Shown: positions 7,635 to 61,571, counted from the stretch's first letter. The stretch: DNA of 64,000 nt from Asterias rubens (GCF_902459465.1 NC_047083.1:10230001-10294000); one strand, 5' to 3'. Notes: generated from the sequence alone by a model not told the origin. Translations and numbers: made by a program.

Positions 7635-9421
7635 CATGAGGTATATATGTTTCTTGATTTGGTATCAGACTTCAATATCGTCACGGAAAGTTGCGGTTCT
7701 GTTGATACCCATGGTGTGAAGAGGAACTGCTGTGCAACTTTTTGAATTAAGAACTTGTCTTTGAAAAGTAAATTGTGCATGTGTGTGAACATTGTTTTCG
7801 AAGCATCAGTTCATGTGGAGGTCTTGCACTCCAAAGCATTGACATGCTTAAAATTAGGTTCCAACTGCTCTATGCCCAATTGCATAAAGCTGTTAAGTAG
7901 ATAGTTCTGCTTAGCAAATATGTTTGCTAAGCAAGAATTGAGTGGGGTAGGTACCAGTCGCAGCAAAATGTAAACTATGATGTTTTGGCTGGTTACTTAT
8001 CACTGCTAAGCAATTTATTTATGTGCTTAGCAAGTTTGTATGCTTACTACTCGCTTTATGAAGTTTGGGTTTGCTTTATGAAGATGTTGGTAAAAAAAAA
8101 CACTTGTAACACTTCCAGATCAAGAAAAACAATTATGTGTAAAATAAAATAAAAATATTTGTAAATATTGAAATTAAAATAATTCTTCAGTATTAAGTCA
8201 GGTTAACGACTTATTTATTTCAATATTTTGGCTCGTTCTATAATTAATATTTAAAAATAATGTGTGTATTGTATGGTCAGTGCTTTCTTTCATAGATTTA
8301 GTCAATGAAAAGGAACTTTAAAAGATTCATTAGAGCTTGCAATAATCAATTTACAAACTAATCCCTAACACTACGAAAATTACATTTTTGTATTATTTAT
8401 CTTGAAAAAGCTGTGTTTGAAAATAAACAAGTTGTGTTCAAAAAGTTCTCCTAACTTGAGGTGTGTGAAATAAATTTATACATTAAAAATGGCCGAGCAG
8501 CCTTGTTCAAAGGACTCAAGTTTCAATGCTTGATTGGGTGTAAGGTTCGAATCTTGTTCCAGACACTTGACCACTATTGCTTATCTGCACCTTGGAGGAC
8601 ATTCAACAGCCCTCTCGAAGTAATTATGCATTTAGAAATGAAGTTTTAATGAGTTTAATTCATGGAGAGGAGCTTTTGTCTCACAATGTCTGTGCAACGT
8701 TAACTCGCGGAGTAAAAAAATCAGATTTGATTTTGTTCATTGTTTTTGGTAATAATTCGGAGCCACCATATCAGCGTTTCGAAAAGGCCCCAAGTGACAC
8801 AGATTGACTGGCCAGTTTCTGCCAAGTGTGGCGCTATCACATCCCAATGGTCCAAATTTTCTAACTGTAGTAGGGACTGCAGTGTTGGAATGGCCCAACT
8901 ATACATGGGGTACATAGATCTGTAATAACTAGTCTCGATAGAAGACCTTCTCGTGTTGATTACCATCTGGGTTTTTTGGTAGGCTATTTTTATTTGGAAG
9001 GTTTGGAATCCACGGGCAAAGGGATGGGTGGAACTCCCCATATTAAATTGAGCAGAGGTCATTAAACAGTTTGTCTTTACTGTTAAAAGCTGTGAGACTT
9101 CTGAATGCATTGTTTGCTATGGAAGTTTTTTGTCGCGAGACCGGTGTGGGGTGATAGCGCCCTCTTGTTTTTTTTTTTTTTTTGACAACACGTGCAAAGA
9201 CTAGTTTGGCCGTCCCAACTGGAACACTTCCCAAAACTACAGTTGGGGCGATTCTGAAGTTGGGCCGAAACACAGCGGTGTAGAGGCGGCGAATTCACAC
9301 ATACACATCCACATTCAGTCGTCTGTTTTTACCAAAATAAAAGTACCGCAAACATTTGAATGGCTGGTGGTCATTGTCTACGCTGAGTGGTATGTCAGCT
9401 CCCAACTTAGTGACCAGAAAA

Positions 9422-12400
9422 ATGGAGACGAAAGTGTGCTTCAAAAAATGCAACTTCAAGTTGGCTATGTTCTTGCACGTGCTCATATCGAGTGTACTGT
9501 TCGCATGTTTTATGAAGTCGTATGCAGAAACAAGTCATGCTTACACTTCTGAAACTAATTCAAAACATGGAATGAAATCATCAGAAGATCTTGAAGGACT
9601 TAGACCTTCTTCGGACTGCTCTGAAGATGATGACAGTTGCTTCATACGCGACGAAGAACATGAACTTGCCGAAGAAGAAGAAGTGCATGGAATTGCTGGA
9701 GCTAAAACTGAACCTAAAGCCGGCTACACATGGGACAAAAATGGGTACATCATGTTTTGTCCATGTATGGGTGAGTAGAATAGAATAAAGTTGGTGGGTT
9801 TACTTTCCTCTTTTCTTTATGAAATTGAAAACCATTTACCGTTCAGAAGCTCACTTGAAAACAATAATTACTTATTTATTTTTTTATTAATTGTGATAAT
9901 AATAATAATAATATGAAGTGTTCAAACCACAATCAACAGTTAGTGGATCGTGGATGACTAAGTAAAAACAGATATGAGATAGTAGGTTCATAGGTCTTGT
10001 CATTAATAATAAAAGTGAGCCATTCATTAAGAAATTCTCTATTTTATGAAATCTTTCCAATATGTAACTTTTGTTTTTAACAGGTCGTTTTGGCAACCAA
10101 GCAGAGCATTATCTCGGAGCAATGGCATTTGCTAAAGCACTCAACAGAACGTTGGTCTTGCCTCCATTCCGGACATATGTAAGTCTTCATTTACTCACAC
10201 GTACACACCTATCCCTATAAATAGCGCCCTCAAGAATTGAGAGTCCAGAGCATTGACACTAAGGGACGAAAAAGACCAAGTTGTGATAATTTGACTCACC
10301 TGTGAGTGTAAAGATCAGAGGGTTTCATAATTAACTCCAACCATGCTCAGGCCTGCTACTTCACGGAGGCAACGGAGGCGATTGCCTCCGTGTCCTTTAC
10401 CAAGAAGAAAATGCCTTGGTGCCCTTGCCATTTCAAAAACGAAGCATACAGCCCTGCATGCTCAAACTTTATTTCAATGAAGTTTTATAGTCCTATAGTT
10501 TTTATCTTTAGTGTGTGCTTGGATGTGCTGTGATTTGTGTTCTTTTTAATATCTGATTTGTAACTCATTTTTGATTATTTTTTACTTGTACTTGCTTGTG
10601 TATTGGTTTTAAATTGCAAAATACTCCAGGCTGTTTTGACATGCGTGACATTAAAAGGTTTTATGAATTGCAGGGTCATTAGTTTTACACTATTTTCTTT
10701 GTAGGCTCATGCATCATTTGGGGAGTTGTTTCAAGTCAGACCAGCTCTTGAGTTCCATCGTGTGATCCTCATGGAGGATTTCATGAAGTTTCTTGCTCCT
10801 AAATACTGGCCGCCTGGTCAGAGAGTTGGCTACGCCCACCTACCAGTCAACGATGATGGTGTTGCATGCACCATGAAAAATGGTAAAGGATCATTTAAAT
10901 ACTCAAAAGTAACTTGACAATATGTGAGGACTTCTTCTCTCAAAATATCTGCATTTACGTGTGTATGACAGGCCTGGAATTTCATCTTTGAAAGGGCAAG
11001 GCCATTTGTATTTTGCAAGGGGCACTTACATTGGAAAACCTTAAAGTCTATGGGGAACTTTTGAAGGGGCACCAAGATGAAATTCCAGGCCTGTCATACA
11101 CCAGGGCAACATATAGACCATGGCCTCCGTGGCATCTTGTATTTCCAGGCCTGTAACTTTGTCTTCTTGTGTGGACAAAAGCTTCGCCTACAGGGAAACG
11201 AGTGGCAGTTTTTTGTATTCCTTTGAACTTGAGAAAGTTGAGAAGTGGTGTTTAATAAGGCACTGGACATAAAAGAAATATTAGCATAAAAATGTACTTG
11301 TTTGGATACACCAAGTTAGAATACTGCTGTCGATTTCACCAAACTCTTCTTAACTTGGGATTAATCTTAGGACTTAGGAAGAGTTCAGTTCTGTATCCAA
11401 AGACGCATTAAACCCATCCTAAGTTAGGAGGGGTTAGGCCTACTCGTCCTAACTTGAGATGGAATTAATCCTAGCGTTTCGTGATATCGGCTGCGGGTCT
11501 TTGATAAATTACCAAACATTTCCAGTGCCCTTAATAGACAATTTACTTTCACAACCTTTGTGTTGAGGGTTAGCCCTGAAAACATTTTTATCCTCTTTTT
11601 TTTCAGGCAGTCCATTTGGACCTTTCTGGAACCACTTCAACGTTACTTTTGATTTATGCATAAAATATCAACTGTTTAATGTTGCTGACATCAGTAATAA
11701 ACAATCACTGGAAACTACAAAAAGAATCTGGGATGAAAGGTAGGTGTTTAAAGAAGTATAGTTTTTGTTTGATGTTCTTTGGTTTTGTTGTTTTTGTTCA
11801 TCACTGTCCAGGCTTGTGTAGTTGGAGCTAGTATACCACTCATCTTGTATACCGCCCTCTGGTGACAACTTAGAATAATGACACTTATGTACTAAAGCAT
11901 TACTTGGACTCAGAAAATAACCCAATTATTTCTTAAACTAGTCAAGTTGTCATTGCCTCTTTCCTATGATTCTCAATTGAGATTTTTGTTTTATTTTTAT
12001 TTAGAAATATTTCTCAACTAGATTTCTGTATTTTCTGATCCTGTTTATTGATGCTTTGTGTATAATTTGTAATAAATACATCTGCAATTTGAGGCATAGC
12101 ATGGTGAGGTATCAATGTATATTTGGTTTGCGGTGACTAGACGATGACTAGAGCAAGCTAGTCGAAACGTTGAGACCAATTTCAGAAATGACTCCGCGGC
12201 AGTACAGTTAATTATGATCCTATAAGCTAAAGTAGTAGTCCAGTCTAATTTCTATACCATCCGCCCTGGTAATAGTTAAAAGCAGGACAGTTCTTTTCAG
12301 AACTGAGAAGTCTCCCGAACCTCCGATTATCTACTCCACGGCAGTAGAATAAAGCAAGACAGTTCCCTAAGAACAACTCTACCTGGCAAGTAGATACACA

Positions 12401-15400
12401 CATGGTGTTACCGCAAACCAAATATACATACATCTGCAATAAAATTTACCTAAATTTGTATTCTTCCAAACACACATCTTCCTTTTTCATTGTTTTCATT
12501 TTAATGTATGAAATAGCACGATGGTATTATATTGTTAGAGTGTATTTTCATTAATACTTTTGTTGTTCAGCACGTTTGAACGAAAATTACTTGGGAAAAC
12601 GGTTAATTTTTGTTTTTGCATTTCAGTTCATCTTGGATAGTTGTATTTATGGTGTATTGGTGTTTGCTTTCATGAAATTTTGTAAATGTTTATTATTTTG
12701 TGCTGTTATATATTTGTGTACATTTTGCATTGTTTTGGTCAAATAAATACTTCTAATCATTTTTATTTCTAAAATGTTCCCCTTTTTTGATTGCTTGTTT
12801 TTATGTTTTGTATTACTTTACGGGATTGTTTTTTGGGTAGTGATTTGGTTTGCTTTTGGGCAATCCCTAGGCTTCCATTTGTTCTTTGTATTTTAAAATG
12901 TCCATAATGTTTTCATAATATTTGTATACATTTCAAGTATTTTGTTGCTATGTGTTTTTGAGGTTTTCAAACCCTGAATGAATGAATGAATAAATTATTA
13001 TAATTATAATTATTATTCATTACCAGATTCCCACCGATGGAGCATCCTGTTATAGCTCTCCGTGGGTCACCAGGCTCCTACCCAATGCTTGGTGGAAACC
13101 GAGCTATCCAAAAATACTTCAAATGGGAACCTAAGTTTTTTCAAGAAGCTGGAACCTACATCAAGGAGACATTTCAAGATGAGGGGTTCGTTGGAATCCA
13201 TTTACGGAACGGAATAGATTGGGTAAGTAAGATTGATTTTCTAAAACTTGCTTCATTCATTCTCAAATTCCAATGCAGTATTTTGATGATGGTAGTTTTT
13301 AGGTTGGTATTTTTCATGACTTTTATGAAACAACATCTCACCTCAACATCATCTCGATCTAATTTTTAACAATTTTATACATTTTCTATTATAATTGTTC
13401 TCTTTTTCCTGTGCAAATATTTAGTTTTCTATTATAATTGTTCTCTTTTTCCTGTGCAAATATTTAGTTTGGTATTTGATTGTACATGTATGTTTTTGAG
13501 TGATCCAAGTTGTAACAATTTTGTACATTTTGATTTTAATAATAATTGTTTTCTTTTTCCTGTGCAATTATTTAGTTTGGTATTTGGTTGTATGTTTTTG
13601 TATGTTTTTGACGATGGCAATTTTTAATCAGCTTTTTGGGCTATCCTTGGTTGTATTTTTTCTGTTTGCTTGACTGTATTGCCGAAATAAGTAATAATAG
13701 TAAATAATAATATGTGCCTTACCATTGAACTACATTTGTACATTATTGATGCTATGTACTGAACAAATGTTGCTATTTTCTGTTTTGCAATATTTATAAT
13801 GTCGTGAACTATAAATCTGTGTACGATTGTAGAGAAATACATTTTATTTGTTGACCCTAATCCTTACCCCGACCCCTAACACTAGAGTTTCTCATAAATT
13901 CCATTTGTTATATAGCTTTCACTTCTGATTAATTGTGAAAATATCTTTATTATAGGTAAGGGCATGTCAACATGTCGATGACCACCCGTTAAAACGCTTC
14001 ATGGCTTCAACACAGTGTCTGGATGCAACGCCTGACGCCATAGTTACAAAGGTAACAATTTATAAAACTTCTGTGACAGATTTGTTTATAGTCACACAAA
14101 AATCACTTGATTCTTTTGCCCTGAATTTAGTTTGTCCAGAAAGGTATTTCCCTTGAGTTTAAAGGCAGTGGACACTATTGGTAATTACTCAAAATAATTA
14201 TCAACATAAAACCTTTCTTGAATACAAGTAATGGGAAAGGTTGATAGTATAAAACACTGTGAGAAACAGCTCCCTCTGATGTGACGTAGTTTTCGAGAAA
14301 GAAGTATTTTCGAGAAAGAAGTATTTTTTCACAAATTTGATTTTGAGACCTCAGATTTCGAATTTGAGGTCTCGAAATCAAGCATCTGAAAGCACACAAC
14401 TTCAAGTGACCATGGTGTGACAAGGGTGTTTTTTTTTTCTTTCATTATTATCTCGCAACTTTGATGACTGATTGAGCTCAAATTTTCACAGGTTTGTTAT
14501 TTTATGCATATGTTGAGATACACCAACTCTTAAGACTAGTCTTTGACAGTTACCAATAGTGTCCAGTGTCTTTAAATGATTTTGGGTTGAACAAAGACAA
14601 ATTGACTAGGTTGTATGGCTTCTGAATGGCCCCCAGTACAACGATACTTACATAGGTAGACTGCCAACAAAGGGACTCATATCTGTTGGAAAATGATGTC
14701 ATCCCAAAATCAAATTGACCTTGAACCCCCATAAAAATGTTTTATAATGTTTTGTAAACACCTTGTGGTTTCTGGAGTATTGACTTTACAACGTTTTGGA
14801 TTATTTTACAGGAATTATGTCTTCCCAGTCTCTCTCACATCCTTGAGCACACGGCAGCTGTATTCAAACATGTCAACGCTAGACATCTTTACATAGCAAC
14901 AGATAAACAACCATATATAGAGGAATTTACAAATCTTCTACAACCAGTTGGGGTAAGTTTTAGAAATCTGTCATACATATTCATTAAAACTCAGCATTGA
15001 TTCCTTAATAAATATTCATAACCTGACTTCATCCATTGATGTACATCCATTACCAATTCATGAATATTCACGGATGCTGTTTCTTAATTTAGATTCTGTT
15101 GACTGAAACCTAACTTTGTAAGGAAAACCTTATGAATAATAATGATTTGTGTAAATTTCATGTTTGAATTCTGTTCTTTTTTTTAGCACCCAATCATACA
15201 GAAACTGACCTTATAATTTGTTTTCTTCCTATTTGTTGAGTTTCTGTTCCTATCTGAAACCTAACTTTGTAAGAATAAACTTTTGAAATAATCATGATTG
15301 TATTTTTATGTTCAATGTTCAGTTTGAACCTCATGAATAATCATGATTTGTATAAATTCTTTTCTTTGTCTGGTACCTTATCATACAGACAGACCTTATA

Positions 15401-16984
15401 AATATTCATGGTCTTTTTCTCTATTTCAGTGTATTTCTGTTTTTATTATTTTCTGTTGTATCTTTTGTTTGTGCTTCTTCTGTGGTCGCCTTACCAGTTA
15501 GTTTTTTTTTTTTTTTTTTTAGAATTAGAGGTGTCTGTCTCTAAGAGATCCAAACATTACCGATTCTAGCAGGGTTAGGCCTATGTAATAAGAAACTTTT
15601 AGTATATTTTATTATTAGAGGCTTTAGGCGCTTTACAAATGTCTTTATTATTATTATTATTATTATTATTCTACGTTTCAAAAAGTGATAATATGCACTT
15701 TGGATCCTTCATGTAAGGGCACAATATAAATATTAAGTTATAGTTGTTATTTTCTAATTTTGTCTTGATCATTAACTGACATTCATTCCAGTTGAGTCAT
15801 ACCTTATACATATTCATTAGTCTTAGGAGTCATACCTTATACATATTCATTAAGATTAGGAGTCATACCTTATACATATTCATTAGTCTTAGGAGTCATA
15901 CCTTATACATATTCATTAGTCTTAGGAGTCATACCTTATACATATTCATTAGTCTTAGGAGTCATACCTTATACATATTCATTAGTCTTAGGAGTCATAC
16001 CTTATACATATTCATTAGTCTTAGGAGTCATACCTTATACATATTCATTAGTCTTAGGAGTCATACCTTATACATATTCATTAGTCTTAGGAGTCATACC
16101 TTATACATATTCATTAGTCTTAGGAGTCATACCTTATACATATTCATTAAGATTAGGAGTCATACCTTATACATATTCATTAAGATTAGGAGTCATACCT
16201 TATACATATTCATTAAGATTAGGAGTCATACCTTATACATATTCATTAAGATTAGGAGTCATACCTTATACATATTCATTAGTCTTAGGAGTCATACCTT
16301 ATACATATTCATTAGTCTTGGGAGTCATATCTTATACATATTCATTAAGATTAGGAGTCATACCTTATACATATTCATTAGTCTTGGGAGTCATATCTTA
16401 TACATATTCATTAAGATTAGGAGTCATACCTTATACATATTCATTAGTCTTAGGAGTCATACCTTATACATATTCATTGACATTAGTCTTAGGAGTCATA
16501 CCTTATACATATTCATTAGTCTTAGGAGTCATACCTTATACATATTCATTAGTCTTAGGAGTCATACCTTATACATATTCATTAGTCTTGGTAGTCATAT
16601 CTTATACATATTCATTAAGATTAGGAGTCATACCTTATACATATTCATTAGTCTTAGGAGTCATACCTTATACATATTCATTAAGATTAGGAGTCATACC
16701 TTATACATATTCATTGACATTAGTCTTAGGAGTCATACCTTATACATATTCATTAGTCTTAGGAGTCATACCTTATACATATTAATAAGTCTTTTTTTCC
16801 TTCCCTTTTTCAGGTGACTGTTCATTATCTGAAACCCGACTTTGTCGAAACAGATCTTATGATTCTTGGCCAAGCAGATTATTTCATCGGGAATTGTATC
16901 TCGTCATTTACCTCCTTCGTGAAGCGAGAACGAGATGCGAACGGGAAACCTTCATCATTCTTCGGCCAAGATTTGAACTTTTGA
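9422..16984 (+). CDS. POFUT1: GDP-fucose protein O-fucosyltransferase 1 (GT65)
   Basis: Exons 9422-9770, 10084-10178, 10705-10882, 11607-11739, 13027-13222, 13956-14051, 14812-14952, 16814-16984. Motifs [75 protein letters not shown]. Start could be ATG 9422 or 9467. Ends ...[10 protein letters not shown]. Confidence 0.92.
12089..12427 (+). mobile_element. Short hammerhead-headed retroelement copy (Penelope/retrozyme-like), 5'-damaged, in POFUT1 intron 4
   Basis: 13-bp direct repeat ATACATCTGCAAT at 12076-12088 and 12428-12440. A 19-bp perfect inverted repeat (12116-12134 / 12410-12428). About 165 nt differ at only about 5 positions from 46211-46375. Confidence 0.7.
14163..14571. mobile_element. 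About 410-bp TTAA-flanked MITE (Kolobok/T2-like), representative full-length copy
   Basis: TTAA on both sides; TIR AGGCAGTGGACACTATTGGTAATT / AATTACCAATAGTGTCCAGTGTCT. Related copies at about 1075-1192, 19455-19822, 24340-24442, 28050-28343, 30785-31160, 32865-33195, 35526-35918, 37725-38280, 41878-42252, 43143-43486, 60800-61170, 61170-61340. Confidence 0.85.
15793..16783. repeat. 30-bp minisatellite, about 33 units, in the last POFUT1 intron
   Basis: Unit GAGTCATACCTTATACATATTCATTAGTCTTAG-like, with variants ATTAGTCTTAGG / ATTAAGATTAGG / ATTAGTCTTGGG and two ATTGAC insertions. Confidence 0.97.
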
Positions 16985-19900
16985 ACATCTCATACATGAA
17001 TTTGTATCCACTGTTTTTTGTTTTGGTTTTTTTTCTCAAATTAGTTTTTGGAGATAATATGGTGGAAACAATTGGAGTGCACTGTTTGGTTTGGGTGTAT
17101 AAGGACAAATTAACCCAAACCTAATACAGTCATTTTATTTTGTTCTATCTCAAATGGTTTATTCTACTCAGAAAGAATTTGTGCAGCATTTCAAAACGGC
17201 AAAGAAATTTAATTAACTAATCAATCAATTCACAGATGGATTTGAAAGAAATATAACACAAAAAGTGCATCATTGTTTTTTATTTTTGGAGGAGTAAATG
17301 AGTTCCACTTCCAAAGTCTTCTAGAAACACACAATTTAGAAATAACTTGTGAAAATTTCATTCAATTCAGTGATAATTTTTTAGTGAAAACAACATGAAT
17401 ATTTTGTGCTTTATCACTGGAGTTTGGTTGCATGTTCATATCTTGCTTATTTTGATTGTGGCAATCAAAATAAACCAAGATATGATGTGGTTCTCCAATG
17501 TTCAACTTTTACATTTTTTTTGACTGAAATATATCGGTGGAGTATTAATGCTGGAGTAGTAATTATTAATCGTATACAGTCGTTTTTGAGTATTTCTTTC
17601 CAAAAATGTATAATGTACTTTGCCAAAAAAAAATATATACTACCAAAGTCTTTTACTTATAAACAGTTAACATTTAGTTTTTTTTTTTCTTCTTTTTTCC
17701 AAACACCAATTCTGTGCTTTGGTCCTAGTGTAATTACCAAAGTCTATTAATTTCCTGAAATAATATCTTCTTTGTATTTTTCACTTATTTTGAATCTTTC
17801 ATTGAGCAGTTGAGATTCTATATCCCTTTTAAAATATTTTGTTGATTATGAAACTATATATTTTTACAAAATGTTTTAGTTTTTGTATTTAATTTTGATG
17901 GTGGCTGGAATAATGGTGTAGTTTTTTTGAATGGAATTTGAGTGATATGCAATTTTATAAACAGAAAAATAAACACATAATATTTTTTTTAATAAAATGT
18001 CTTGGTAATTAAAGATTTATTTTTGTCTCAAATTAATACATGTTAAGTACAGCATCTTTAGAATTAATTGATGGTCTGAAAATCCATGCTGTTTAAAGAT
18101 AAATAATAAATTGTTAGCGTCAGGAATTTTGTTTGTATGAGGCAAGTTCAAGGAAGAAGTCTATTACACATAACAAATTAACCCACCAGTATGAAGCCTT
18201 ATAGTGTACTGCAAGATGCATTACTCTGCGGCCATTCAAATATCTTGTCTAGTTTCTCGTCCGGCGCCAACGAAGATTTTATCTCCATTAAAAGAAAAAA
18301 ACACGCATCCTTTTCTCTCACTGAAATAAATAACATTCTATAAAGGTCACAACTGTAAATGAGTTTTTGTTGAACTTATTTTTTAGAAACTGCTTACCCA
18401 CCAAAAGGAGTTATGAAAAAAATAGTGGCCTGACGTTCGACCCTAGCAGAGTAGAAGGCTAAAACATGTTAAACTTTGGTAAATTTTAGTAGTTTTGTTT
18501 TCTGGTAAAAATCGGAATTTAGCCATCTGTGGGTAATTTAATTTATGTTGCGCTCTCTCCCCTGTTCGACTTCAAGGGTATATTATAACAGTAAAAATGC
18601 CTCAAAAAAATTACTCGGAAACACTTCAAGAAAAAGTACACCGTAAAATATAAGCAATAGAACTTACAACAAACAAACAATTTTTCTTCTTCTATGTCTG
18701 ATTGATGCGAAACTAATAATCATTTCTGATTGGTCAATCGTCATAAGTGTACACCTTATGTGTACACGTATACACGTAGAGCTGTTGCAAACTGGCGCGT
18801 GACTTTAGACTTGATCGCGGTTATTCCTCTGCTTCAGCCACGAAACACCCCACAATCTGTGATCGTAGGCTATGACGAAGGTTCATCTACAAGAGGGCGC
18901 TATTTCATACACTAATGACATTGTATTGAAAACAAGTCTATATGCAGTGACTGGTTCCATGACATGTGCTTTCAAAATTCTGACCAAAAATGGTTGACAC
19001 AAAATCAGAGCAGCTCTATGGATGTGGTTGAGTGCCGTGTGCAAAGTGTTTAAGATTCGCCAAGAATGTTGCTGAGGGGTTTTTCTTGTAGAATTATGAA
19101 GATTTGTCTCTTTCTGTTTGGGAACTAACTAGAGAGGAAGACGCAGTGAGGTTTGGTGTGCCGTGAAGTCATAAACCGTATATTGGGAAGGAAGAGTGTT
19201 GGTAAGTTATGGTTGTGTTTGTTTGTATTATCATTATTATTGTTTTGATATGTCTATCTTATCATTATGTGGTTTAAATATGTGCGGTTGATTTTTAGTA
19301 TAAGAACCAGGGAAAGTGAACAATCTGTCTGAATTAATTGCTGTTTGACAAACTTGTTTTTTTCTCTCTCAAATATCATGAGTTTCCATTGTTGTTCTTG
19401 GAGAAACCAATGCTTATGGTCATTGCCCCCAGGTTATTCAAAAGCTCCCTGTAAAGGGAAGGTACACTATTGGTAATTGTCAAAGACCAGTGTTCTCACT
19501 TAAGGTATCTCAACATATGCATAAAATAACAAACCTGTGGAAACTTTAGCTCAATTGGTCATCTGAGTTGGGAGAAAATGATGAAAGAAAAAACACCCTT
19601 GTTGGACGAATTTGTGTGCTTTTAGATAGAAATAAAAGACTTCTAGCTAGAAGTATTTTATTATTTTAGTGAGAAATTACCTCTATTTCAAAATCTTTGT
19701 TACTTCAGAGGGAGCCGTTTCTCACAATGTTTTATACTATCAACAGCTCTCTAATGCTCGTTACCGAGTAAGTTGTTAAGTTAATATTTGTTTTGAGTAA
19801 TTACCAAACGTGTACCTTCCCTTTAAGTTTACGACGGATGGTAACAGATCATAGAGCTATATAATAAGAACCAACATCCAGATTCTCCCCATACCATTTA

Positions 19901-27749: not shown

Positions 27750-30233
27750 ATGGCAATAGTTGGAAACAGAAGAGGCTGGATTGCTGTGGCTTGTTTGAAT
27801 GTAACTTGGATGTTATGGACGGGAACTATTAAAGGTCTTGGATTGATGATACCGAGTCTTATGGAGCAATTTACAGCTCAGACTTGGCTGATAGGGTGGA
27901 TGATAGATATTGTTATTGCAGTTATTAATATTTCAGGTAATTTATCTTCAGTGAAAATATCGTCTTCTTTTCTGTTTGGGAATCACTCTTCATCGTTCTT
28001 GTTATCATTTTCTTTCATTACTTACAGCTATTGGTACTACTACTTAAAATAATTACTTGGTATTGAGCAAAGGTGAGCTGTTGATAATAAAACAGTTAAT
28101 AATGGCTCCCTTTGAAGAAACGTAGTTTTTAAGAAAAAGGGTGTTTCTTTACTCAAAATATTAAAATACTTCCAGACTTGAAGCCTTTTATTTTGCATCT
28201 GGAAGCAGACACTTGTCCACCAAGGTAGTTTTTCTTTCATTGTTCTCCTGTATCTTCGATGACCAATAGAGTCAACTTTTTCACAGATTTGTTATGCATA
28301 CACATTATGCTGGGATTCAACCAAAGATGTCCAGTGCCTTTAAAACATACACAGAATTATTACTTATACAAGACCGTCAGTTTTACCGTTAGGGGCGACA
28401 TTCGGTCCTAGATTTGTTGTCACTTTAAACTCACAAATGAATAAACCAATATTATGCAAGTCTTAGAACACACTTCTTATGTGGAATGATTGGTGCACTG
28501 TTCGCAATTTATGGTCCCGATTTACTGTTTGGTTCTGTGTTTTACAACCTGATAGGACCGGTAGCTGCACCGTTGGGGGCGACATTTGGTGTTAGAGCTG
28601 TTGTCATGGTGAGCGGTATGATGGTTGGAGGTTCTTTGATTGTGGCTTCATTTGGTTCAATCGTTGCTCAACTCATAATGATACTGGCGATTGGATATGG
28701 TAAATCGAAACAAAGTTTGACAAATCTCGTTTTTTTCTTCTTCTTATGAACTCAAAGGACCAACAAGTTTTTTTTAAATGCCCCCCCCCCCCAAAAAAAA
28801 AAAAAAAACTGGAAAAAATCGAAAACAGTTTGAAAAATCGAGATACAGTCTTTTCATCAAGGCAATAATATGACAACTTCATTCAAACATTATAATTACT
28901 CTAAATTGTGAAATGTTCCTTTTGCTTTAAAGGGCCAGGAATGAGCTTCGCAAATATTCTGACAAAAGTTGAAATAGCACGTCGTTTCGAGCATAACTAC
29001 GCAACAGCTAATGGAATCGCACAAACAGGAAACCCACTTGGACTGATCTTAGTCGTTCCTTTAATCAAACTATGTCTTGATACATACGGATGGAGGGGTG
29101 CATTTCTTGTGTTAGGAGGACTGAACCTGAATCTTGTCGTATGTGGCGCCCTTCTAGGTAAACCATCAATTGAGACGAATCGAGAATCTTTCAAGTCTGT
29201 TCCTTCTTGCGAGGAGGGAACCACCACAAAGAGTAGTACTTTAAGAAACGCTTTGGTGATTCTAAAAAGTCGATTCGGCATCTCTGTTTGTCTGCGTCTT
29301 ACCTTCTGGATCCCAGCTATTATGTTTATTTGTAACACTGTAGTGGACGCTTTCTGGAGTATTTACTACGTCAACCACGTGGAAGTTAAAGGTTTCACCT
29401 CAGATAACGCAGTGGTCTTCATCACAGCGGCTGGTGTGGCCAAACTATTCTCAAAAATTGGTTTTGGAATTCTGGTCGATAGAGGGATTTTGAAGCTGAG
29501 ACCAGCACTCGCTATTGTTATAATAGTACCTATGATTTGTTTAATCATTGATCCATGGATGGACTCCTATTGGCTGTTGCTAATTAATGTCGTCATCTTT
29601 GCAGCCTTCTCTAGTGCCCTGGCGTCTTTGAATGATGTTTACACGAGGGAGTTAATTGGAAGGGACCTGATTGCTTGTGCATTTAGTTGGATGGGTTTGG
29701 CAATCGGTATCATAACCTTCTGCAGCGGATTTTTACCAGGTAAATTAATATTCATGAAGTTTTTTTTATCTACTATGCCATAAATGCTCTTCATAACAAC
29801 GCAGCGAGGCAAGCTAGAAACAAGTTTAGTTTTGAGGTAGTTGATCCAATATACTGGCTGCAAACTTAATAAGTGTTTCTCTTTCACACGCAGCGAGGCA
29901 AGCTAGAAACAAGTTTAGTTTTGAGGTAGTTGATCCAATATACTGGCTGCAAACTTAATAAGGCCGTGTCCGAAACGGTGACTTCGGCTACAGCTATGGC
30001 TAGCTCGCGCGCGTCTGCCTATTCTTCAACACTGGTAGACGCGCTGATCTAGACGTAGCTGTAGCCGAAGTCGTCGTTTCGGACACGGCCTAAGTGTTTC
30101 TCTTTCACATTTAGGTTGGATACTCGAGCAGACTGGAAGCTATGACGTAGCATTCGTCGTCACAGGATGTCTTTATATTCCACCGTTGGTGGCACTCTTT
30201 ATAGAAAGTGTTCTTCTACAAAGAAACACTTGA
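27750..30233 (+). CDS. SLC16/monocarboxylate transporter-like MFS protein
   Basis: Exons 27750-27936, 28556-28699, 28933-29739, 30115-30233. GWIAVAC...KGLG (TM1), ANGIAQTG, YGWRGAFLVLGGLNLNLVVCGALL, GWILEQTGSYDVAF are SLC16 hallmarks; multiple hydrophobic segments. Confidence 0.88.
29962..30090. mobile_element. 129-bp Tourist/PIF-Harbinger-like MITE with TAA target duplication
   Basis: TIR GGCCGTGTCCGAAAC / GTTTCGGACACGGCC; TAA at 29959-61 and 30091-93. The empty site is visible in the duplicated segment just upstream. Confidence 0.88.
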
Positions 30234-31694: not shown

Positions 31695-32462
31695 CTAAAC
31701 AGTTAAAGGCTCATAATAGAAGCATGTGTCCATAGATGTGACGTCGGTGATGACGTCAGCTTCAAGACGAGTTGCGTCATTGTGCTGGCAAATGATTCCA
31801 TCAAGCTTCTTCAAGAGATTGAAGGAGTGGCAGTGGGGCTCGGCCCAGCAGGTCAGACCACACCCAATAGGGTGTTTGACGATAAAGCTCTTGATCTGAT
31901 GGTTGAGCATACACAACTCGGGCGCGTGGATGTAAAGAGCCGATGAGGGCGCTATTCGAGGTCGGTATAACTCTACCTTCGTTTCACAGGCCACAAAGAA
32001 GAGACTGTTACAATTCCTATCTGCAAGCATCCCGCTGTATTCTCCTTTCATCCTTATGCAATCGTGTGCTTCATTCGGCTCGTTGTCATGCCAATTTGGA
32101 TAAAGTGTGTTATCTTGATCACCTTGGCAACGCATCTTTCTTGTATTGTCAACATCCTTACACCCAATCCAAAGTTGTAAGTCTCCGGACGGTACTGCAC
32201 CTTTAAGTATCATCCATTTGGTCATCTCGTCCCATAAATAATCGTACTCACTGTCTGTATTTGGGACTATCATATTTACCCCAAGTTGTTCACATGCCTT
32301 TACACCATCGTCATAATTCATCTTGCTGGACAGTAAAATGTAGCATGAATCATTCCATTCCTTCCAACCAGGTGGACATGCTGACGTCACAGCACTAACA
32401 GCAACAACAACAACAACAAGTGCGGTTTGAAAATACTTCTGAGATGCAGTCGTAGATGCCAT
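31695..32462 (-). CDS. Secreted C-type lectin (EPN type) with C-terminal PAN/apple-like domain, intronless CDS
   Basis: 255-aa ORF: signal peptide, CPPGWKEWNDSCY, LWIG, NWHDNEPNE...C...ADRNC, CE; then C-x-CGLTCWAEPHCHSFN...CQHN...CFYYE. Confidence 0.9.
   Translation of the reverse strand: MASTTASQKYFQTALVVVVVAVSAVTSACPPGWKEWNDSCYILLSSKMNYDDGVKACEQLGVNMIVPNTDSEYDYLWDEMTKWMILKGAVPSGDLQLWIGCKDVDNTRKMRCQGDQDNTLYPNWHDNEPNEAHDCIRMKGEYSGMLADRNCNSLFFVACETKVELYRPRIAPSSALYIHAPELCMLNHQIKSFIVKHPIGCGLTCWAEPHCHSFNLLKKLDGIICQHNDATRLEADVITDVTSMDTCFYYEPLTV

Positions 32463-51158: not shown

Positions 51159-61571
<10,413 letters not shown>

Follow-up and report, generated by a model that had tools for sequence, protein, structure and literature searches.

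Gene Model and Transcript Evidence

The window analyzed here is a stretch of 64,000 nt from the starfish Asterias rubens (GCF_902459465.1 NC_047083.1:10230001-10294000), eukaryotic DNA with a GC content of about 36%, and its subject is a gene of the POFUT1 family on the plus strand at positions 9422–16984, counted from the first letter of the window. The gene was rebuilt from stop-to-stop frames and splice sites as eight exons separated by introns that are all of the GT–AG type; the in-frame coding sequence of 1359 nt encodes 452 aa and ends with QDLNF, followed by a TGA at 16982–16984. A first-pass annotation of this DNA had described a POFUT1 with no KDEL-like tail and a long acidic N-terminal stem, and the eight-exon model recovers the features at the positions it had given. 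Judged by its sequence, the gene is a member of an ancient paralogous lineage, referred to here as B-type, and not the canonical Notch-modifying POFUT1.

The NCBI protein XP_033645535.1 of A. rubens (P0339, 462 aa) corresponds to the 452-aa model plus ten additional residues, MSAPNLVTRK; it starts from an upstream in-frame ATG at 9392 and is otherwise identical. The ENA fragments P0340 and P0341 are likewise translations of exon 1. The start at 9422 chosen in the first-pass annotation holds as an in-frame ATG in a strong Kozak context (agaaaaATGga), but it is the second in-frame ATG of the transcript. From the lengths of the RNA contigs alone, the 5′ leader would extend as far as a small upstream open reading frame (ORF) listed in Table 1.

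Transcript evidence was obtained by aligning assembled contigs of four public RNA runs, drawn from at least three studies, to positions 16783–19500. In all four runs contigs start at 16813/16814, the acceptor of exon 8, and these contigs carry a further 1257–1298 nt upstream, matching exons 1–7 (1188 nt) together with 70–110 nt of 5′ untranslated region (UTR); the start exactly at the acceptor and the upstream lengths point to an exon 7–exon 8 junction. Exon 8 contigs run unbroken through the TGA to 17928 (run X8) and 17974 (run X2), and depth ends in the bin 17966–18056. No joint leaving exon 8 before the stop was seen in the contigs of the four runs. The joints that were detected all lie 3′ of it: 17034>17678 (non-canonical ends, depth about 5), 17416>19463 and 17698>19470, the latter two leading into a repeat. 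Since the contigs read through the stop codon with no earlier joint, QDLNF is the end of the ORF of the mature mRNA. The missing KDEL-like tail of the first-pass annotation is thus real: genome and RNA contigs agree on the end FFGQDLNF-stop, and so does P0153, the ortholog from A. amurensis, a protein of 451 aa and 95% identity that has the same N-terminus, starts with METKVC and ends with QDLNF.

In run X2, a C>T difference at 16953 changes Ser to Leu within KPSSFFG, five residues before the tail, the tail itself being invariant; further differences at 16957 and 16966 are silent, and the 3′UTR contigs of this run differ from the reference by about 1.6%. A 643-bp part of the 3′UTR (17034–17678) is missing from two contigs of run X8, which have 15 other letters in its place and CT..AG at the ends; the gap is probably a UTR insertion/deletion allele and not an intron. 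At 19452–19500, contig depth is at least 10^5 in all four runs, with many differing loose ends, which marks the edge of a very abundant repeat.

Family Assignment, Fold and Catalytic Residues

The exons match Pfam PF10250 (GDP-fucose protein O-fucosyltransferase, O-FucT) colinearly at positions 10–38, 50–94, 152–190, 227–271 and 295–325 of the family, with E = 3.8e-9 for exon 2 against positions 10–38; the same family is also precomputed for the cluster of P0339 and for its relatives. Exon 8 is about 78% identical to human POFUT1 (5ux6) and aligns to structures of mouse POFUT1 as well. P0339 was modeled with AlphaFold from an alignment of 41 sequences, and the mean predicted local distance difference test (pLDDT) score was 83.4; over residues 112–462 the score was mostly above 90, and no 10-residue block fell below about 85. 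In a Foldseek search the best matches of the model were mouse and human POFUT1 (template modeling (TM) score 0.91, root-mean-square deviation 2.0 Å, 43% identity; E = 4.8e-43 for 5ky5_A), followed by C. elegans POFUT1, then POFUT2 (TM about 0.5–0.6) and FUT8 (TM about 0.38).

The catalytic motifs, regarded as intact in the first-pass annotation, proved to be so at the level of single residues: all nine donor-binding and catalytic residues of human POFUT1 (R43, N46, H238, R240, D244, D340, S356, S357 and F358; PMC6096484) are kept in P0339, as R128, N131, H320, R322, D326, D420, S436, S437 and F438. The pair F266 and M267, by which mouse POFUT1 contacts the epidermal growth factor (EGF) domain at the residue next to EGF Cys4 (PMC6096484), is retained in the window protein. 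The protein likewise keeps NRT, a conserved sequon for N-glycosylation, in keeping with a luminal location.

Of the eight conserved cysteines of the canonical POFUT1 disulfides (in human numbering, the CPC pair, C126–C140, C249–C283 and C267–C354), seven are present in the window protein. In the four starfish copies of the B-type gene that were compared (copies A and B, described below), Ala stands where human POFUT1 has C126, and all four carry a new Cys 18 residues past the C140 equivalent, a pattern that suggests a rewired disulfide. We are highly confident that the window gene is an intact, transcribed GT65 GDP-fucose:protein O-fucosyltransferase and a functional B-type paralog.

The B-Type Lineage: Phylogeny, Tail and Hairpin

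Homologue searches were carried out with exon 8, the Acanthaster relative P0001 and P0339; the matches to canonical POFUT1 of amphioxus were filled up by vertebrates, with no echinoderm canonical sequences listed among them. Many of the matches annotated as POFUT1 or POFUT1-like end 2–9 residues past the conserved FWG/FFG, with no spacer and no x-[DE]-E-L. Within deuterostomes, these tail-less proteins occur in all five echinoderm classes, hemichordates and Branchiostoma floridae, and in other taxa they were found in Lingula, annelids, a nemertean, many molluscs, rotifers, anthozoans including Nematostella, and the sponge Corticium.

A careful maximum-likelihood tree of 48 rows placed the window gene in a tail-less clade of 24 rows (support 98/97), outside which lie the vertebrate, insect and nematode sequences together with two further A. 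rubens paralogs, C and D. In a careful tree of 88 rows, the window gene belongs to a 60-row clade (99/91) composed of the homoscleromorph sponge Corticium, anthozoans, spiralians, ambulacrarians and amphioxus. A single member of the 60, the Acanthaster ortholog, has an EL end, with the tail RDLEL. At the next split (65 rows, 100/96), the clade is joined by a demosponge-type group whose hairpins are intermediate and whose tails read x-x-E-L. Branching inside the 60-row clade roughly tracks animal phylogeny, and both types coexist in A. rubens (genome), in the crinoid Anneissia japonica (P0363 versus P0087), in Branchiostoma (P0167 versus P0173) and in Porites (P0371 versus P0413). This order, together with the coexistence of the two types, argues for an ancient duplication and not for repeated recent loss of the tail. 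No clade member was present among the vertebrate, insect or nematode sequences returned by the searches, which is consistent with loss of the lineage in these three groups.

In mouse POFUT1, the hairpin V72–S91 moves to hold the C5–C6 half of the EGF domain via H80 or F85 (PMC6096484). Its length was read from the alignment as the residue count separating the conserved PP from the V-P-F position. On the canonical side (25 sequences) the hairpin has 13–18 residues, with a median of 16, and on the B side (66 sequences) the median is 8 (range 8–16), typically R-T-Y-K-N-V-P-F; the window protein has 8. EL/EF tails were present in 6 of the 66 B-side sequences and in 19 of the 25 on the canonical side. 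The halving of the hairpin, which the first-pass annotation does not mention, indicates that part of the acceptor-binding surface of the B lineage changed as well as its sorting signal, and it is chiefly on this ground that another acceptor preference is suspected. From the alignment, we consider the odds evenly balanced that the acceptor specificity of the window protein is altered.

Cnidarians have a second POFUT1 type (P0106, P0403, P0410, P0413 and P0419), with a long hairpin, which falls on the canonical side and has no x-x-E-L; its ends read FFGLD, AYENI, FKDEK and FDEEK. On present sampling, neither cnidarian type carries a classical retrieval signal.

Four POFUT1-like Paralogs in the A. 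rubens Genome

Exons 5 and 8 of the window gene served as queries against the whole 417.6-Mb assembly and detected four POFUT1-like loci: A and B on C23 (10,582,139 bp), C on C21 and D on C20. The B-type gene is duplicated in starfish; copy A is the window gene, with the tail QDLNF, and copy B (P0151, 465 aa), which lies at 3.286 Mb of the same chromosome, has the same eight-exon plan and the tail QEYSGF. Paralogs C (C21, 7.805 Mb; 404 aa, tail ...SPFHEEL) and D (C20, 3.517 Mb; 405 aa, tail ...HVADEL) were modeled by hand from tblastn hits and splice sites alone. In both, a short signal peptide directly precedes the catalytic domain, the hairpin is long, and the protein groups with canonical POFUT1. 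The search for a second, KDEL-type POFUT1 in the genome was therefore positive twice: HEEL is also the tail of Drosophila Ofut1, and ADEL matches the classical [KRHQSA]-[DENQ]-E-L pattern of PROSITE. Relative to mammalian POFUT1, identity falls from 48% (A) through 43% (D) and 40% (C) to 39% (B).

Each of the other three paralogs shows peculiarities of its own. In paralog C (C21:7800000-7820000, L011/L012, minus strand), exon 2 occurs in tandem in two versions separated by about 600 bp, at reverse-complement coordinates 9569–9763 and 10192–10316 of the joined stretch (GRFTGQ... versus GRFGNQ...). Both have an AG acceptor, a GT donor and the same phase, and their hairpin-encoding ends differ; from the sequence they look like mutually exclusive exons giving two acceptor-binding hairpins. 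In paralog B (C23:3281000-3301000, L009/L010) the C-P-C motif is lost (CQRVG) and the fucose-binding Arg is replaced by Asn (GNFGNQ), a replacement also found in Acanthaster P0001 and Holothuria P0155; donor-sugar binding of this paralog may be changed or lost. In paralog D (C20:3510001-3520000, L014) exons 6 and 7 are fused, intron 3 is at a different position, and the last intron has an apparent GC donor (AAG|GCTAGT), as read from the reading frame only.

N-Terminal Region and Stem

Counted from the ATG at 9422, the window protein consists of a 13-residue start, an uncharged run of 18 residues, SYA|ET, an acidic stretch of 68 residues, and WDKNGY...CPCMGRFGNQ; with the ATG at 9392 the n-region has 23 residues. 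The signal was judged by run length, hydropathy and the −3/−1 rule. The Kyte-Doolittle 19-residue mean of the hydrophobic segment is 2.03, and AlphaFold places a helix over residues 22–55 of P0339, with a block pLDDT of 86–90 at residues 21–40. In the stem, residues 44–106 of P0339, pLDDT falls below 50. The 72 residues that follow the hydrophobic run have a net charge of −12 and a D+E content of 26%, which bears out the long acidic stem of the first-pass annotation. Exon 1, which encodes the N-terminal part, gave no match among solved structures, and the stem has no structural relative and is predicted by the model to be disordered.

The distance from the hydrophobic segment to the W-D-x-x-G-Y motif is 4–18 residues in canonical proteins, usually 16–45 in B-type proteins and 60–83 in the four starfish copies. 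The stems of these four are all acidic (net −8 to −14), and each contains a Cys pair spaced by 6 or 8. By this comparison, the extended acidic and disordered stem, together with its small Cys loop, is a starfish elaboration. The A copies have long n-regions, and their hydrophobic run comprises 18 residues in Asterias and 26 in Acanthaster; the Acanthaster run looks like a signal anchor and favors anchoring, and the Asterias run appears borderline. The succession of n-region, hydrophobic run and stem, seen by hydropathy and in the AlphaFold model, is compatible with the type II Golgi glycosyltransferase layout to which the first-pass annotation had likened it, and such a layout is plausible for the window protein.

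Comparison with Known Fucosyltransferases

Enzymes of the POFUT1 family take fucose from GDP-fucose and attach it to Ser/Thr of C2-x4-S/T-C3 in EGF repeats that are folded, and the canonical, ER-resident members typically carry a KDEL-like retrieval signal such as RDEF, HEEL or KDEL behind a short spacer. With canonical POFUT1/Ofut1 (GT65; human, mouse, Drosophila O-fut1 and C. elegans; 5ux6, 5kxh, 5ky*, 3zy2-6), the window protein shares PF10250 and the GT-B fold, the CPC-MGRFGNQ, HLRxGxDW and GNCxSSF motifs, the F-M contact to EGF, an N-terminal hydrophobic entry signal, the NRT sequon and 43–48% identity. It differs from them by the absence of the spacer and of the x-[DE]-E-[LF] tail, by a hairpin (mouse V72–S91) of 8 versus 13–18 residues, by a stem of 68 acidic disordered residues versus 4–18, and by the lost equivalent of human C126; moreover, it stands in a separate clade, with canonical genes in the same genome. 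Its B-type relatives (S. purpuratus P0157, Nematostella P0368, Pocillopora P0164, Lingula P0168, Branchiostoma floridae P0167 and Corticium P0359) share the 99/91 clade, a short hairpin of the R-T-Y-x-N-V-P-F type, the abrupt end past FWG/FFG and the catalytic residues. Most of these relatives, however, have a plain short signal peptide that looks cleavable and a stem of 16–45 residues, whereas in the starfish A and B copies the stem reaches 60–83 residues and includes a Cys pair, the Cys pattern is rewired, and the A copies have in addition an unusually long n-region and hydrophobic segment.

POFUT2 (GT68) and POFUT3/POFUT4 (FUT10/FUT11, GT10) are also protein O-fucosyltransferases that act on folded Cys-rich domains and have no KDEL-type signal, but they belong to other families, use other acceptors (TSR and EMI domains) and are reported to reside in the endoplasmic reticulum (ER) (PMC11990869); structures of POFUT2 match the window model weakly (TM about 0.5–0.6, 15% identity). 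The Golgi type II fucosyltransferases FUT1-9 have the layout suggested by the sequence of the window protein, in which a short basic N-terminal tail and a single hydrophobic segment lead into a long, flexible stem and the luminal catalytic domain. The catalytic domain of the window protein is of the POFUT1 type and not GT10, GT11 or GT23, the TM score of FUT8 being about 0.38. The lack of a KDEL-like tail in a schistosome POFUT1 has earlier been noted as an oddity (PMC3655985).

Features of the Locus and Neighboring Genes

The coordinates of the gene's features are collected in Table 1. The tandem repeat that fills most of intron 7 (33-bp unit, 92% matches) maintains open reading frames exceeding 300 codons, none of them a gene, and intron 5 contains a perfect 43-bp tandem duplication of 2.1 copies at 13382–13470. 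Among the neighboring long ORFs, that at 28908–29783 (plus strand) matches an MFS_1 transporter (E = 2e-16), that at 31695–32462 (minus strand) a C-type lectin (E = 2e-9), and that at 56246–56614 (plus strand) the tubulin-tyrosine ligase family (E = 8e-12). The long ORFs upstream of the window gene showed no PLAGL2-like zinc-finger partner of POFUT1.

Table 1. Features of the B-type POFUT1-family gene, in window coordinates.
Feature	Position	Strand	Remarks
Small upstream ORF, 8 codons + TGA	9360–9386	+	Read from sequence; out of the main frame, precedes both ATGs
First in-frame ATG	9392–9394	+	Context agtggtATGtc, weaker Kozak; NCBI start
Exon 1 (from second ATG)	9422–9770	+	Basic n-region, hydrophobic segment, acidic stem, WDKNGY, CPCMG
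Hydrophobic segment, 18 uncharged residues	9461–9514	+	Signal-peptide h-region or signal anchor
Acidic disordered (predicted) stem, 68 residues	9527–9730	+	C-x6-C pair CSEDDDSC
Exon 2	10084–10178	+	GRFGNQ donor/acceptor motif (equivalents of human R43, N46); first half of hairpin, PPFRTY
Exon 3	10705–10882	+	Second half of hairpin, AHASF, at 10705–10719; GYAHLP with Ala for human C126
Exon 4	11607–11739	+	SPFGPFW..., NVT sequon, extra Cys in F-DLC-IKY
Exon 5	13027–13222	+	H at 13199–13201, catalytic R at 13205–13207, D at 13217–13219
Exon 6	13956–14051	+	RFMASTQC motif; F-M equivalent to mouse F266, M267
Exon 7	14812–14952	+	Model and Pfam match
33-bp tandem repeat, about 30 copies	15794–16793		Most of intron 7
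Exon 8	16814–16984	+	GNCISSF GDP-binding motif at 16889–16909; tail QDLNF at 16967–16981; TGA at 16982–16984
3′UTR, about 1 kb	16985–17995	+	AATAAA at 17968 and 17991; RNA contigs

Candidate Site of Action and Alternative Explanations

The explanation that we favor by a modest degree of confidence is that the window gene encodes a B-type POFUT1-family enzyme which acts post-ER, with a shifted acceptor preference, beside canonical paralogs. The protein would enter the secretory pathway via its N-terminal hydrophobic segment and, with no KDEL-receptor retrieval, would work beyond the ER, either as a type II protein held in the Golgi by an uncleaved 18-residue anchor or as a secreted protein after cleavage at SYA|ET. 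It would O-fucosylate small Cys-rich (EGF-like) domains with GDP-fucose from the pool in the Golgi and with a preference unlike that of canonical POFUT1, and the HEEL and ADEL paralogs would keep the canonical ER/Notch role. Taken on its own, the post-ER site of action of the window protein has, in our estimate, slightly less than an even chance.

Several points weigh against this explanation. The hydrophobic segment is 18 residues long and includes one His and two Ser, S-Y-A|E-T agrees with the −3/−1 rule, and both 9392 and 9422 are candidate start codons; cleavage and anchoring of the N-terminus are both plausible. The absence of KDEL is by itself no proof of exit from the ER, as the precedent of POFUT2, POFUT3 and POFUT4 demonstrates: these enzymes lack KDEL-type signals, yet they are ER-localized (review PMC11990869). 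The RDLEL end of the Acanthaster ortholog might be a weak retrieval signal, and the basal members of the wider short-hairpin group (the demosponge group, lgn143) carry x-x-E-L tails. A shortened hairpin need not abolish EGF recognition, and one of the four conserved disulfides is without its usual partner, the equivalent of human C126. The trees are unrooted, with deep relations among the canonical subgroups weakly resolved, and the RNA evidence, consisting of assembled contigs, speaks to presence and splicing only, not to expression level or exact ends.

The same precedent of three ER-localized enzymes without KDEL lends weight to a different account, in which the B-type protein is held in the ER by a retained partner or substrate, a mode of retention that has been proposed for POFUT2, POFUT3 and POFUT4, and serves there as a second O-fucosyltransferase or chaperone with EGF-like clients of its own. 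Known POFUTs all require folded domains and act in the ER; the EL tail is not universally needed, being also absent from the cnidarian long-hairpin POFUT1s (Rhopilema, Actinia, Porites lutea, Orbicella), and the RDLEL tail of the Acanthaster ortholog would fit as well. We nevertheless consider ER residence rather unlikely, though a serious contender. The spacer and x-x-E-L/F are nearly universal in canonical-side bilaterians and missing in 59 of the 60 B-type members, with both types coexisting, which suggests a different sorting regime and not indifference to the signal. In addition, the starfish layout of a basic tail, a hydrophobic segment of 18–26 residues and a long stem resembles that of Golgi type II enzymes.

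The literal form of the first-pass proposal was that this is the Notch-modifying POFUT1 of the species, which lost its ER signal and thereby moved Notch O-fucosylation to a non-canonical compartment. Of the four paralogs, the window gene is indeed the one nearest to mammalian POFUT1, at 48% identity, and the B-type protein of S. purpuratus bears the RefSeq name 'protein O-fucosyltransferase 1 precursor'. The idea of a re-targeted POFUT1 is, however, borne out in part only: the missing tail, the acidic stem, the intact catalytic motifs and the compatibility with a type II layout stand. That a Notch-type POFUT1 lost its signal is very improbable: the same genome holds two KDEL-type genes that group with canonical POFUT1, the tail-less state is old, common to sponge, coral, mollusc and amphioxus members, and so no starfish event, and the hairpin that clamps EGF is halved. 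Least probable is an artefact or a decaying gene, with the true C-terminus in a missed exon or the locus a pseudogene. The 1-kb tandem repeat of intron 7 might conceal a mis-assembly, and the loss of one conserved Cys could be read as a sign of decay. Yet spliced contigs in four runs join exon 7-side sequence to 16814 and continue through the stop into about 1 kb of UTR, which rules out an alternative last exon or a mis-called stop, and the C-terminus lies at the same position in A. amurensis and Acanthaster. A pseudogene is ruled out by the intact ORF, the GT–AG splice sites throughout, the complete set of catalytic residues and the 95% identity to the A. amurensis ortholog.

Implications for the O-Fucose Pathway

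The gene had already been annotated as "POFUT1-like"; what appears to be newly recognized is a distinct ancient paralog lineage with loss of the tail and shortening of the hairpin. In the full-text literature searched, we found no paper naming or describing the B-type paralogy, although the main paper on POFUT evolution (Loriol et al. 2006) was outside this search and an earlier description is possible. Gazave et al. (2009), who surveyed Notch components broadly, state that they built no O-fut tree.

A. rubens has four family members, two of which, including the window gene, belong to a lineage that reaches from sponge to amphioxus. This B lineage keeps the chemistry and is without both features of canonical working, namely ER retrieval and the EGF-clamping hairpin. 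The picture drawn from vertebrates, flies and worms is of one POFUT1, at once enzyme and chaperone, which Notch cannot do without and which is ER-resident and KDEL-retrieved. Extending the proposal to the whole lineage, we tentatively suggest, as a doubtful but conceivable generalization from sequence comparison, that most animals other than vertebrates and ecdysozoans possess a second ancient post-ER enzyme, Golgi-anchored or secreted, which would fucosylate Cys-rich domains other than those of Notch and which in starfish would take the form of a type II protein with an acidic stem.

If the B-type enzyme has its site of action outside the ER, or modifies other domains, the reach of O-fucosylation in most marine phyla would exceed the textbook account, and papers that record "POFUT1 present" as a Notch component in such animals may refer to the wrong paralog, the POFUT1 precursor of S. 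purpuratus being B-type. Should the post-ER interpretation be true, the lineage would represent an O-fucose pathway absent from all model organisms in which O-fucosylation has been studied.

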